This document shows positions 41,001 to 49,325 of a DNA stretch of 64,000 bases, one piece after another. Location of the stretch: contig NC_088853.1 of the NCBI RefSeq assembly GCF_963853765.1, positions 44,206,001 to 44,270,000 of the forward strand, read 5' to 3'. Position 1 is the first letter of the stretch. Each line of letters starts with the position of its first letter. The notes below the pieces were generated by a model. That model was not told where the DNA came from. It was given only the letters and a program-made list of their open reading frames with translations, and ran no database searches. A program made the position numbers and the translations under genes. The stretch comes from Magallana gigas (taxonomy: Eukaryota).

Positions 41001-44000
41001 TTAAGATGTCCAGACCCCCTCCTGTCACAATCTACATCATTCTGCACATGTTTTCTCACTACAAACAACAGAAAAAACAGATTTTTTTCTCCAGTTGTCA
41101 TTTAATATAGTCCACATACCTAATATCATAATCGAATCCCTCTTCTTGCTGATTTATTAGACTTATTCCTCACTGTATTAAGCGCACAAGGGGTAGTAGC
41201 AGTGAAGAATGAGGCCTTATTGCTAGAATTGGATTTGTTGGACACTGTACATTGTCCTAAAATTATAGCCGTATTTGATGGACCATATTGGGCTAAAGTT
41301 GGGTTAGTATTTAAACCATTTCTGATCCCTCGCTGTTGCCCAAATAGATTTTCCACAATGTCAGAATTCAAGTATCCTGGGTTGATGGTGTTTTTCCCAT
41401 TTAACCTCAGTTTACACAAAGAAACAAATCCCATTAAAGAGGAGTTCAAGTCACTTCTTGTTTCTTGTGTCATAAGATTCTTAGTGTTCACTTTCATCAC
41501 TGATTTCTCTACCTCACTCTCCCATGAGTTAAAAAAAGAAAGAGTTTCCATTATTGTCTCAAATTTATTGTCCTCCATTGAGAGAATTGGTTGCCTTGTT
41601 GAGCAAAATATTTCAACAATCCGTGAAGTATGCTCTAGAAGCCTTATGCTGGCTTCTAGGTTCTCAGGATTTTTGAGGGTAGATTGATATGACTTCATAA
41701 GGTACAACATGTCCTTATTCAGTACTTGTATGGCCAGTTCATTTCTCATCTTTGATGCTGGTGTGAGATGAATGTGATCTTCTGTGAGCTTCCTGTGAAT
41801 AGAGAATCCACCTTGAAAGTTATAATTGAAACTCTCTTCCCAGTGCTCCCAGACAATGCAGTTGTTTTCTAGCAACAAATATCTTCCAGCCTTTGTCTTG
41901 TGTTGCAATTTACTTGATTCTATGTTGTTACGTATTTTTTTCAAACAATGCATCATATCTTGAATGTATACTATCTTGTGCTGGGGAAAAAATATGTCAC
42001 TAAACACAAAGTCAGAACTTCTGGGGGTCTCAGGGTGGGGGAACAACATTCCTGCAAATTTTCTGTTTGTGGAGGCTCCATCTGTCATTATGTAGTCCAC
42101 ATGCACATTCCTGTCCCCAAGCATATCAACACATTTCCAGAAAACATTGTATAGTTGGTGTGCTGTCCCTGGATTGGAGCCGAAATACACCACTGGCCAC
42201 CTTTGAAAAGAAATGTCACCTTTTCAATTACTCTGCTATTATGATAATGATCCAAGGAAATTCTGCTATTATGAGAATGACATAATGATATCTGTTCTGG
42301 AGTAAACTAATAAATGATGATTAATGTTTAAATACTTAATGTTACAATATTAATTGCATTTAATATAGGCCTTAAACATTATAAATATGGTAAATTTTAT
42401 AAATAATTTACCTGAATCCAGTTAATCCATGAAAAACAAATTGGATTACATGTGTCGCTAGTTTCATTTCTTTCTTTCCCTTGCAAATAATGTCAATGTT
42501 GTTATTTGTAGACCCCATGTCCACAAATCCCACCAGATTCCACGCGTCCCCGGACTTGGTGATTATTAAATCATCCTGGATGGTCATCTCATCGATAATT
42601 AGTCCACCATGTCTCCCAAAGTCTGGAACATTCTGTTTTTCCATTTCTTTACTCATCCACAGCAGATTGTCCTCACAAAATCCGGGACTTTGTTTGACGG
42701 AATTTTTGTAGTAGCGAAGTAGTCGCTTGGATGGCAGTTGTAAGAATTTTGAATTCTTTAAATCTTCATACGCCTGTGGGGATCGAATGTACAGAGTTAG
42801 GCAAAGGCTTATAATTTTGGGGTCCCAGCGCCGCTGATGCTTTTCCAAATCTGGTCGCGCACAATTCTGCAACTGAGAGCGTAACAAAAGTCCAAAATTC
42901 TCTGGCAATCCCTCTTGTTTTAAAACGATATTGATCAGTTTTTCCATGTCCTCCTGATCATCACTGTTGAGAACAATTTGTTCCACATTTTCTGAGTTAC
43001 TCTCACAGTCTTTGTTTAAGTCTTTGGGAGGTGTTGACTTGCCCAAATTAATGTTCTGATCAACTTCTCTCAATGCACGTTTTCTCACTGGGGAATCCTT
43101 ATTTTGTGTATTTTCCATTAGAATAGAACGTTGAGTTGTTGCAGCCACTGTCTCTTTGGATTCAGATTCCTCACCTGTACTGCAATCTGGATTCTTCCTT
43201 TTTCTATGATTTCTTACCCTGGAAATGTTACAGGAGGGACATGCATCCTGCTTTGCAAACCATTCTATAAACACATTACAGTATTGTGACCTCATTATGG
43301 AAGTTTGTTCAGTTTCATGTGAAGCTGAGAATTTCTCTTCTTTAAATGTTTTTGGAAAGTAATCATCATCTTTCTTATATCCTTTACACAGATTCAGATT
43401 TGAAATCAAATGTATAATTCCATCTACACTTGTCTGCGTAAGAGGGACGGCAAAGGTTGTTGCTAATTTTTTCCCGTCAATTTGAATTGAGCAGTTGGTT
43501 GGTTCAAATATAACCAAACAGTTTAACGGTTTGCTATTCCGTGTGTAGGGCAATGGACATGTAAATCCAAAGAATCTTGCAGTCTCGGCAACTTTACACA
43601 TTGATGGTAATCGTACAAACTTATCCTGGCTTGTAACTATTCTTGGACTTAAATTCTTGAACATGATTCCTCTTTCTCCTTTTGTCACTCTAGAACATAT
43701 GGATTCCACATCATACAATCTTCTGATAAGTTTTCCCAAAGTCTCTGGAGTAGGTGTATTGGTCTGAATTACTTTTACACAGGCTTTATGAATATCCTGG
43801 AGACTGACAAACAATCCATTTGTATTCTCGAAATTCAGAGCCAACCTAAAATATATAATATGAGAAAATTTAGAACTTATTCATTGAAATCATATTTGCT
43901 CTCAGTAACACATATGGTTAATAATTTTAGGAATATACAAATAATGATGTTAATTTGCACACTTTTTATTCCCCCTCTATTCTGTCTTTTAAGTCAGGAA

Positions 44001-47000: not shown

Positions 47001-49325
47001 CATTTGAAACACATGTGAAATTTTTATATCATAAAGTGTGTGACATTATGAGGAAATCCCCAAAATCCCCACAGGATTGGACTGATGCATTCATTACCAT
47101 GAACACATTTCTTCTCAGTGATGTACATATTTCTTCTGTGAAGCAATTGTTTCAGAAAGAGGCACTTTCCAAAGAAGAAAACAAGTTGAGTACTAAGATT
47201 GTTCTATGGCTTATGGATAAAGAGATTGAAAAACAAGCACAAAATCTGGTTCAAAAACATATTGAAAATGCTAACAAGTCTGAAGTTTCTTCAACATTAT
47301 CTGCAGCAGCAGAAGCAAAATTGAGATATCTAGCTGGAGCCTGCATTCAAAAAATTACAAAACGAATTAAAGAGTCAGTTTTAAGAAAAATAGGAAAAAC
47401 TTCAAAGAAAAGTAGAATCCTCAGGAAAATGGAATACAGGAAGCAAGCAATGTTAAAAAGCTTCAGGATAAAAGAAGAAGATGTCGAAGAAGGTCAGCAG
47501 AGCATGCAGGAGATTGAATACAAACAAGGGCCAACCAGGGGCTTGACAATTGTCAGCGAGTCTGTGTTCTCATTTTTTAAAACGCTGCATAACACTGTAC
47601 AGAAGAAGTTGACAACTGACCATTTTCATTTATTTCCTGACTTGCATAATGTGATCCGAAGAAATGTTGATTCTGACATGACTCTGGCAGATGAGTGGAT
47701 TGCATTATTTAGCAATGTGGAGGTTACAGACGAAGAATTAGACAATGAAATTTTTTTAACATTAATTATGGAACTCTATCGAGACATTACAGAGCATTTC
47801 ATCAGGATTTCTTATGTTGATGCTTTAAAGAATTTTAAAAGATCTGTTCCTCGGAAGAAGAAACAAGCATTGAGATCAAAAGTTCAAGCCTTAGGTGAGA
47901 GGGAAGACCCGAAAAAAAAGAAAGTAGATGAGAAAGAAGAAGATTCCTTTTCGTGTAGTATATGCAAATGTAACTGTGAATGGGAGCCAGCTAATATAGG
48001 GGATCAGAGCATTGCATGTGACAAGTGCAACATATGGTTTCACTATAAATGTGTAAATTTAAAAGGGAATGAAGCCTTTCTAAAAAAGACAAATACAACA
48101 TGGTACTGTTCAGGTTGTAGCAGAAAAGGAAAGGGGCGAGGGAAGCGTTCTTCCAAGAAATAGGTACAGCATTGAAAATACAAAATAAAAATGGTTATAT
48201 TTGTTGTTTCTTTACTGGCAATGAATGGTCAAAAATCAACCCATCAGACCTTACTTAATACTAAATCATTTGTTAAGCTATGATTTTATTCAGTGTTCAG
48301 TTTGAAAATTAATTTTCTTATTTTATCACATTGTACACCCATATTTTATTTGTGAAATATGCAACAGGCATGTGCGGATCAAGGAGGGGGGTCAGGGGGA
48401 TACCCCTCCCCCCCCTCCTGCAAAATTCAAATTATATTAAGAATATTAAACAATTACCTAAATATGCATTATCCCCCCCCCCCCAAAAAAAACACCTTGG
48501 AAAATTTTTCTGCACATTTGCACAGGAGTTGACAATTTTATAAATTTGTTGTAAATTAATATATGCTCACTACACTTGCAAAGATCACTGGTAGTTTTTA
48601 TTTGATTTCTCGTTAATAAAATTTATTCACAACAAATTAATAGAATTGTTGACTCCTGTGGTTATGGTATTGTAAACATTTTGTCATGCATTTTCACCAT
48701 TGAAACTTTGTGTCATTGTGCACTTAATAAAATCTACTTACCACACAGCTGCATCAAAGTTGTTGGACATTTCAAATGTCTTCAATCGGCAGTCAAAAAC
48801 GAACGTCAAAATCTGTTTTCAAATTTCCCGCAAACGAAACTATCGGATTATCGCCCTTTATTTTCAAAGTTATGGTATTTAACATATCTTAAGGAGATAG
48901 AGAAGGGAGATGATATTTGGATTTTTTAACATTATAAAATAAATCAAACACAATAATAAATATAATTTTTTTTTATTAGCATTAGTTAAGATTAGATAAA
49001 TGTATATTTTCTGCAGTGAATGTGACGTCACGCAGAATTGTCAATGGCCGCTGTTTAAGATCGAGATTTGCATAACTTGGATTTAAATGACTACGAAGAG
49101 TAAATGTTGGGAAAAAAATGCCAGGGATTGATGAAATAACCCTATGGAGTTGATATGTGGTGTTTAATTTGGGTGTGATAGCGAAATAGAGAAAATCTGG
49201 AAAACTCGTTGCCATCCTGTCGCTTCGCTCGCTACGCTCGCGAAGCTCACTGGTAGGGTTTTTGCCTGTTTCTCATTTATTTACAACAAATTGATAAAAT
49301 CGCCGACTCCTGTGGCATGAGAAAC

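Follow-up and report, generated by a model that had tools for sequence, protein, structure and literature searches.

We analyzed a 64-kb stretch of the Magallana gigas genome (contig NC_088853.1, forward-strand positions 44,206,001 to 44,270,000; hereafter the window, numbered from its first letter). The window is AT-rich eukaryotic DNA, and our subject is a DNA transposon of 9,205 bp that spans 40110-49314 and carries terminal inverted repeats (TIRs) of 306 bp at both ends. The minus strand of this element encodes a transposase, and a preliminary description, made from the letters alone, had read the N-terminus of that protein as an RFX-type winged helix and not a THAP finger. The reading that we favor, and consider likely to be right, is that the gene encodes a P-element- or THAP9-like transposase with an RFX-type winged helix and a four-cysteine (Cys4) domain as its DNA-binding head. 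The element and its transposase gene are laid out as follows.

40103..40109 and 49315-49321, no strand: target-site duplication (TSD) GCATGAG, 7 bp, perfect
40110..40415, no strand: left TIR, 306 bp, 100% complementary to the right TIR
41126..42200, minus strand: exon 3, remaining catalytic region, stop at 41126-41128; 48% identical to the Pinctada protein P0032 over 336 residues
42201..42411, minus strand: intron 2, 211 nt, GT..AG
43845-42412, minus strand: exon 2, after the acceptor TTTTAG
42420..42689, minus strand: N-terminal part of the TNP-like RNase H catalytic domain, PF21787 (E 3.7e-7, 31 bits, cutoff 24.6)
42714..42908, minus strand: P-element-type helix-turn-helix (HTH), PF12017, weak (E 0.008, 17 bits, cutoff 23)
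43209..43637, minus strand: conserved alpha/beta domain with four invariant cysteines, from homologue alignment and model
43635..43845, minus strand: rest of the predicted RFX-type winged helix, at the start of exon 2 (end of helix H1, strand S1, helices H2 and H3 with GKLIRRLY, and the beta-hairpin wing SRVTKGERGIMFKNL)
43846..48741, minus strand: intron 1, 4.9 kb, which holds the body of an opposite-strand Pif1-PHD helicase gene, repeats and a mini-element
48741-48736, minus strand: exon-1 donor GTAAGT, where the sequence continues gtaagtag
48742..48770, minus strand: coding part of exon 1, 29 nt (ATGTCCAACAACTTTGATGCAGCTGTGTG), encoding MSNNFDAAV and the TG of Trp10; predicted first half of helix H1
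49009..49314, no strand: right TIR, 306 bp; its inner edge is 239 bp from exon 1

The transposase gene and its catalytic core

Two long open frames lie on the minus strand, at 42408-43844 (478 residues) and 41126-42193 (355 residues), and the joined three-exon frame closes at 845 codons (845 residues). By eye, exon 1 (48770-48742) joined to 43845 reads MSNNFDAAVW|LALNFENTNGLF, which is exactly the spliced N-terminus that the preliminary description had quoted; the acceptor of intron 1 is tatattttag|G at 43846/43845. From its upstream stop to residue 60 the exon-2 frame has no in-frame ATG, and the listing of open reading frames (ORFs) could start it only at TTG 43844. Hence, the conserved N-terminal coding sequence needs an upstream exon that supplies an ATG.

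Intron 2 is confirmed, as the transcript contigs L007 and L008 (89-94% identical to the window) skip it exactly and the RefSeq model XP_065927627.1 (P0135 in our set) joins GLTGFR|WPVVYF across it. This Magallana gigas protein is 99% identical to both transposase exons. We note that, compared with 41129-43844, the RefSeq model begins at an internal Met, residue 184 of the exon-2 ORF, and is named 'uncharacterized protein'; as a result of this start, the winged helix and the greater part of the Cys domain are missing from it.

Both the ends and the core of the element are those of the P superfamily, in which target-site duplications of 7-8 bp are the norm. The element combines TIRs with a 7-bp duplication, and its protein has the TNP-like RNase H domain of the superfamily: PF21787 scores above the Pfam cutoff in the window protein and reaches 1.3e-18 in the Pinctada relative P0032, and the second open frame (exon 3) continues the RNase H domain. 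PF21788 and PF21789 occur in relatives. The latter, the GTP-binding insertion, was not detected in exon 3 of the window at E<=1; it is present in the clade member P0106 and in distant canonical relatives.

The N-terminal module

We compared the N-terminus with known folds by means of AlphaFold predictions, on which all structural statements here are based. The window model (m3d7d1021ec27) comprises the first 215 residues of the exon-2 product, and the complete N-terminus was modeled via the homologue P0003. The window model (predicted local distance difference test, pLDDT, 91.7; predicted template modeling score, pTM, 0.84) has a winged helix at residues 1-69, composed of a strand (5-14), two helices (15-25 and 33-44) and a hairpin (48-67), and then a second alpha/beta domain. 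In a Foldseek search of 350,542 PDB chains, the top match was the complex of the RFX1 DNA-binding domain with DNA (1dp7_P, probability 1.0, root-mean-square deviation, rmsd, 2.6), and the sole other match of low rmsd was RFX5 (8zjr_M). VIA-align against 48,161 representative chains placed the same two structures on top, RFX1 1dp7_P with Z 8.8 (rmsd 2.1, 68/76 aligned) and RFX5 8zjr_M with Z 8.8 (rmsd 2.2). Z fell to 6.1 for the third chain, the origin-binding domain of phage P4, and to about 5.3 or less for ordinary winged helices.

Residues 1-92 of P0003, which is 47% identical in the domain, were modeled at pLDDT 87, and residues 2-14 of this model are helix H1. Its exhaustive alignment gave RFX5 at Z 12.0 (rmsd 1.8 Å, 80/82 aligned) and RFX1 at Z 10.2 (rmsd 1.9 Å, 75/76), with the next chain at 6.8, and Foldseek returned the RFX matches at E 5e-4 and 2e-3 and the next at 0.11. 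The Z score is thus 8.8 for the window model, in which H1 is missing, versus 10.2-12.0 for the P0003 model, in which it is included, and this rise indicates that the exon-1-encoded residues belong to the RFX-type fold. The preliminary description had taken its RFX match as independent support for the 29-nt exon, and the placement of the exon-1 part in H1 of the homologue model bears this out. Together, the models predict an RFX-type winged helix (H1-S1-H2-H3-S2-W1-S3, with a single long wing), and the structure prediction and fold search that had been proposed as a check set RFX1 and RFX5 clear of all other winged helices.

Sequence profiles pointed to the same two proteins. A profile of 40 family sequences (A5), which includes divergent members recovered through the catalytic core, was searched against 177,635 PDB sequences; RFX1 (E 0.0036, domain-long alignment) and RFX5 (E 0.01) led, and the next match had E 0.69. 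When the 40 members were scanned singly against Pfam, the family with the most matches was RFX_DNA_binding (PF02257), at 5/40, all of them divergent members, and a best E of 2.3e-5. The family has a nearly invariant SKLI/GKLI motif, and its Lys lines up with that of RFX1 FGKLIR, the minor-groove contact of RFX1 H3. Stork_head, WHD_CHMP7 and Pox_D5 were set aside as identities of the domain, their Pfam matches being weaker and less consistent than those of RFX.

Several results weigh against this assignment. The fold evidence comes from predicted, not solved, structures, and identity to RFX domains is only 14-18%. The best Pfam bit scores, 24.6 for P0078 and 24.2 for P0104 (E 4e-5 and 5.4e-5), lie below the gathering cutoff of 27 bits, so that neither the window domain nor its relatives reach the cutoff for PF02257. 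The window winged helix alone gave no RFX match in Pfam even at E<=10. Searches of PDB sequences by phmmer with the window N-terminus and two homologues returned noise only and no RFX, and two profiles, built from 25 and from 11 close homologues, likewise recovered no RFX chain from PDB. The HMMER comparison with RFX and THAP that the preliminary description had called for came out divided: a family profile finds RFX1 and RFX5, whereas the window protein itself has no Pfam match to RFX or THAP. Because structure and sequence independently indicate the same family, we regard remote homology to the RFX domain, as distinct from membership by the Pfam criterion, as probable.

The low identity and the scores below the curated cutoff would also be expected if the likeness to RFX had arisen by convergence, or if it marked a broader class (RFX, the P4 origin-binding domain and D5-type primase winged helices) with no specific common ancestry. 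Weak matches to Pox_D5 and Stork_head fit such a class, as do the third place of the P4 origin-binding domain in both structure searches and the matches of phage primase winged helices in the viral library. We nevertheless consider this explanation quite improbable, as RFX1 and RFX5 score 2.7 to 5.2 Z above every other chain, 75-80 of 76-82 residues align at 1.8-1.9 Å, and an independent profile ranks the same two first with an E-value ~70-fold or more better than the next. The P4 alpha origin-binding domain (1KA8) and the D5-type winged helices do resemble the oyster domain, as third-best structure match (Z 6.1-6.8) and through weak Pox_D5 matches in two members and the phage primases of the viral library, but the resemblance is clearly weaker than that to RFX (rmsd 3.0 Å, 8% identity) and has no profile-level sequence signal.

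We found no THAP finger. The six frames of the element (40110-49314) contain no C-x2-4-C-x30-60-C-x2-H or AVPTIF-like pattern, PF05485 has no match in the window protein or 30 homologues, and THAP is absent from 73/73 close relatives (described below). The statement that the protein has no THAP motif thus holds for the element and for these relatives alike. The preliminary description had also named two outcomes that would speak against it, the lack of a winged-helix match and a THAP-encoding first exon elsewhere; a winged-helix match was found by profile and by structure, RFX1 and RFX5 being the top two of 48,161 chains and first in the 40-sequence profile, and no THAP-encoding exon lies in the element.

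In the models, the winged helix shares a compact N-terminal module with a second domain. Conservation extends over residues 70-212 of the exon-2 frame, which form a predicted alpha/beta domain of ~140 residues that packs against the winged helix (model pTM 0.84). The separate Cys cluster reported further on in the protein is present (LCKG, RSQYC and CPSC). Four cysteines, C153, C189, C202 and C205 in exon-2 ORF numbering (10 higher in the full protein), are invariant in 23 homologues (C-x35-C-x12-C-x2-C), G155 is also invariant, and P80 and C83 are nearly so. On the basis of this pattern, the four cysteines probably form a Cys4 zinc site. The second domain has no sequence relative in PDB (profile search) or Pfam, and exhaustive and viral fold searches reached at best Z ~5, with weak matches to RWD-like or kinetochore folds.

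Relatives and the first exon

We asked how widely the module is distributed. A word-index search returned one close cluster only. When the first 215 residues of exon 2 were searched exhaustively, 42 cluster representatives came back, most of which match over the whole of 1-213, and in relatives that are long enough the module is followed by a P-type HTH motif (HQRRWDP..IS.CL..Y.RSP) and then the RNase H domain. With the catalytic part of full-length Pinctada P0032 as query, we recovered 73 close relatives (E<=1e-55); those with a named source come from Pinctada, Tegillarca, Mytilus, Mercenaria, Haliotis, Holothuria and Porites. The canonical P domain set was seen in only three distant matches (23-26% identity), and THAP in one of the three.

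A hidden Markov model of the N-terminal module matched 63 of 86 proteins (P0032-P0117), a set that had mainly come from the search with the catalytic core; the remainder are mostly short, N-terminally truncated calls. This spread indicates that the architecture is old and clade-wide. The named carriers of the module are all bivalves (Pinctada, Tegillarca, Mytilus and Mercenaria). Hence, the domain swap envisaged in the preliminary description stands insofar as an RFX-type head takes the place of THAP, but it is a long-standing trait of the clade and not peculiar to this copy. The copies at L002-L004 look decayed, and a TIR search there gave no clear result.

Comparison of sequences makes a strong case for exon 1. 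Homologue N-termini read MSNIFSAALWLALNI (P0003), MSNQIDAVIWLSVNY (P0025) and MAGNIDIVAWLCINY (P0018), and the homologue-derived motif M[SA][NG]x[FIL][DS][AI][AV]xW has one match in the six frames of the window, at 48770 on the minus strand, as against 0/200 shuffles. In the chromosome-scale assemblies of other bivalves, from two other genera (L002 and L004), the first coding exon of the called genes is likewise 29 nt long and ends TG|GT; it splits the Trp codon just as exon 1 of the oyster gene does, and introns of 8.5 and 9.6 kb follow at the same position. A further contig, L005, reads uninterrupted through LDAAAWLVTNYE. Its 5' end is AGTGGTATCAACGCAGAGTACGGG, presumably a template-switch oligo, which identifies L005 as complementary DNA (cDNA). 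Compared with a copy that is 88-90% identical, the winged helix has a dN/dS of ~0.3 and the Cys domain one of 0.25, which points to purifying selection on the exon-2 frame up to the acceptor.

The RNA data, four runs over 43400-48900, tell against the use of exon 1. The joint of exon 1 and exon 2 is not among the matches shown for these four runs of this genome; contigs are unspliced across acceptor and donor, with coverage that looks genomic or unspliced, and the polyA raw reads have no depth on the transposase exons in this interval. The close family is represented by just two transcript contigs, L007 (1-256) and L008 (1-227). Both retain the final 9 nt of intron 1, and the ~247 nt that precede these 9 nt have no match in the window. 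Their 5' part could be a rearranged copy, host-gene read-through or an alternative start.

Taken at face value, the missing joint, the RefSeq start at residue 184 and the retained intron end would mean that exon 1 is unused and that translation starts inside exon 2 (as in XP_065927627.1) or from the intron (as in L007), with the winged helix truncated or absent. We think this very unlikely. Coding conservation and purifying selection reach the acceptor in a frame that has no ATG before residue 60, a 29-nt exon of the same phase occurs in two other genera, the cDNA L005 is uninterrupted, and in the homologue model the exon-1 residues make up helix H1.

Element ends, DNA recognition and known systems

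The plus strand of the element encodes a Pif1-like helicase with a PHD finger at its C-terminus. The helicase gene (40484-48163) begins with a Walker-A exon (40484-40590) next to the left TIR and picks up again at ~44799. A spliced contig connects the pieces 44799-45114, 45633-45861 and 46285-46411, and the splice 45861|46285 (GT..AG) was seen in the RNA data, including a three-exon contig of run X3. As the exons are laid out, the body of each of the two genes sits in the first intron of the other, antisense. Transposases of this clade are always accompanied by a helicase. L002 has helicase remnants antisense inside the same intron (16428-16916), and in the divergent relative P0078 the transposase and PIF1 gene stand in tandem on one strand.

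This transposon copy is apparently intact, young and recently mobile; recent mobility is suggested by the perfect 306-bp TIRs, the intact 7-bp TSD and the 99% identical protein in the Magallana gigas RefSeq set. The left TIR contains CpG-rich GCGAGCGWA repeats at 40183-40204. A perfect palindrome, GTGACGTCAC, which is like a cAMP response element, lies at the inner edge of both TIRs (40393-40402 and 49022-49031), upstream of the ATG codons of the helicase (by 83 nt) and the transposase (by ~250 nt), and may be a common promoter element of the two outward-placed first exons.

Intron 1 also holds a 150-bp mini-element of the same family (48515-48666), 75 nt downstream of the exon-1 donor. It is made up of a diverged copy of the left-end 46 nt and ~100 nt of the right end; its CpGs have decayed to TpG/CpA, and no clear target duplication is visible. 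In the same intron, high-copy repeats at 43952-44871 (summed contig depth 200-3100 versus ~5 elsewhere) include a palindrome with 67-nt arms at 44035-44195 and are probably unrelated miniature inverted-repeat transposable elements nested in the element. A (GA)n microsatellite (49322-49345) directly adjoins the right target-site duplication.

The transposase of the P element binds sites near the element ends through its N-terminal THAP finger. By analogy with THAP in the Drosophila P transposase, we infer that the head module of the oyster protein, i.e. the winged helix (residues ~1-80, the first 10 from the 29-nt exon) and the Cys4 domain, most likely recognizes the element's own ends, and that the end-bound module would bring the RNase H core to them. 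RFX domains contact the major groove of DNA through wing W1, and their H3 lies over the minor groove (PMC2533330). If the oyster domain binds as RFX1 does, the major groove would most likely receive its beta-hairpin wing, and helix H3 (GKLIR) would lie over the minor groove. Candidate sites for the module are (i) the terminal ~46 bp that the element has in common with the mini-element, (ii) the GCGAGCGWA repeats at 40183-40204, and (iii) the GTGACGTCAC palindrome.

We counted sites of the X-box consensus (GTNRCC N0-3 RGYAAC) in the 306-bp TIR. Half-sites are not enriched there, which weighs against the favored reading; the one half-site, GGCAAC at 40211, is at chance level, and so no site is tied to the domain. 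The only full X-box consensus of the window, GTTGCCAAGCAAC at 51960-51972, lies outside the element, ~2 kb beyond a HINT-like ORF at 49907, and could be a host RFX site.

With no binding motif tied to the domain, with the P-type HTH (the PF12017 region) retained and with a helicase always present in the clade, the module might instead tether the protein to host chromatin or target sites, or bind the Pif1 helicase, and the ends would then be recognized by the internal HTH. We regard such a role as unlikely: the module occupies the position that THAP has in canonical P transposases, the solved RFX-type domains that it matches (1dp7 and 8zjr) are all DNA-bound, and the Lys of SKLI/GKLI aligns with that of RFX1 FGKLIR.

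The head can be compared with two known systems, of which the RFX DNA-binding domain (PF02257; human RFX1, 1DP7, on X-box DNA; RFX5, 8ZJR) is the first. The predicted oyster domain resembles it element by element in H1, S1, H2, H3 and the long beta-hairpin wing, and it has in common with it the motifs NYE after H1, (S/G)KLI..(L/V)F in H3 and Y.(G/N)L in the last strand. It differs in its fusion to a Cys4 domain and to the core of a transposase, and the element ends have no X-box. RFX factors are host transcription factors (cilia, major histocompatibility complex class II) and not proteins of mobile elements, whereas the oyster protein lacks their B, C and dimerization domains and is encoded between TIRs flanked by a TSD, and so does not belong among the RFX transcription factors.

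The second system is the Drosophila P transposase and human THAP9, which have in common with the oyster element and its protein the PF21787 RNase H domain, a PF12017 HTH (weak here), TIRs, a 7-bp duplication and a head at the extreme N-terminus. Their head is a THAP C2CH finger, whereas that of the oyster protein is the RFX-type winged helix with Cys4, and in the window protein Pfam detects no GTP-binding insertion or C-terminal domains. The canonical THAP-bearing relatives differ further in their core, which is only 23-26% identical, and the oyster element also carries the Pif1-PHD helicase.

To our knowledge, the RFX-type winged helix is otherwise known only from RFX transcription factors, and the origin of the domain is unexplained. 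The literature that we searched contains no paper linking RFX domains with transposases, and RFX is unmentioned in a survey of transposon-derived transcription factors. It is conceivable, although we hold it to be a long shot, that the RFX domain, to date regarded as a hallmark of host transcription factors, joins THAP, BED and the paired domain among those shared by transposases and transcription factors, RFX factors having come from an ancient transposase head or an early RFX domain having been captured by a transposon. The wing-in-major-groove mode of RFX would in that case serve the recognition of transposon ends. An exchange of heads between transposase and RFX factor may have run in either direction.

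If the favored reading is true, a DNA-binding domain is added to the repertoire of cut-and-paste transposases, with a whole P-like clade, named in bivalves, that does without THAP. The RFX domain would gain a relative among mobile elements, and its link to transposons could be tested by phylogeny and biochemistry. Current annotation misses the winged helix in the RefSeq protein of Magallana gigas. As the copy looks intact and young, knowledge of its head and ends would be a first step toward testing it as a genetic tool for bivalves.

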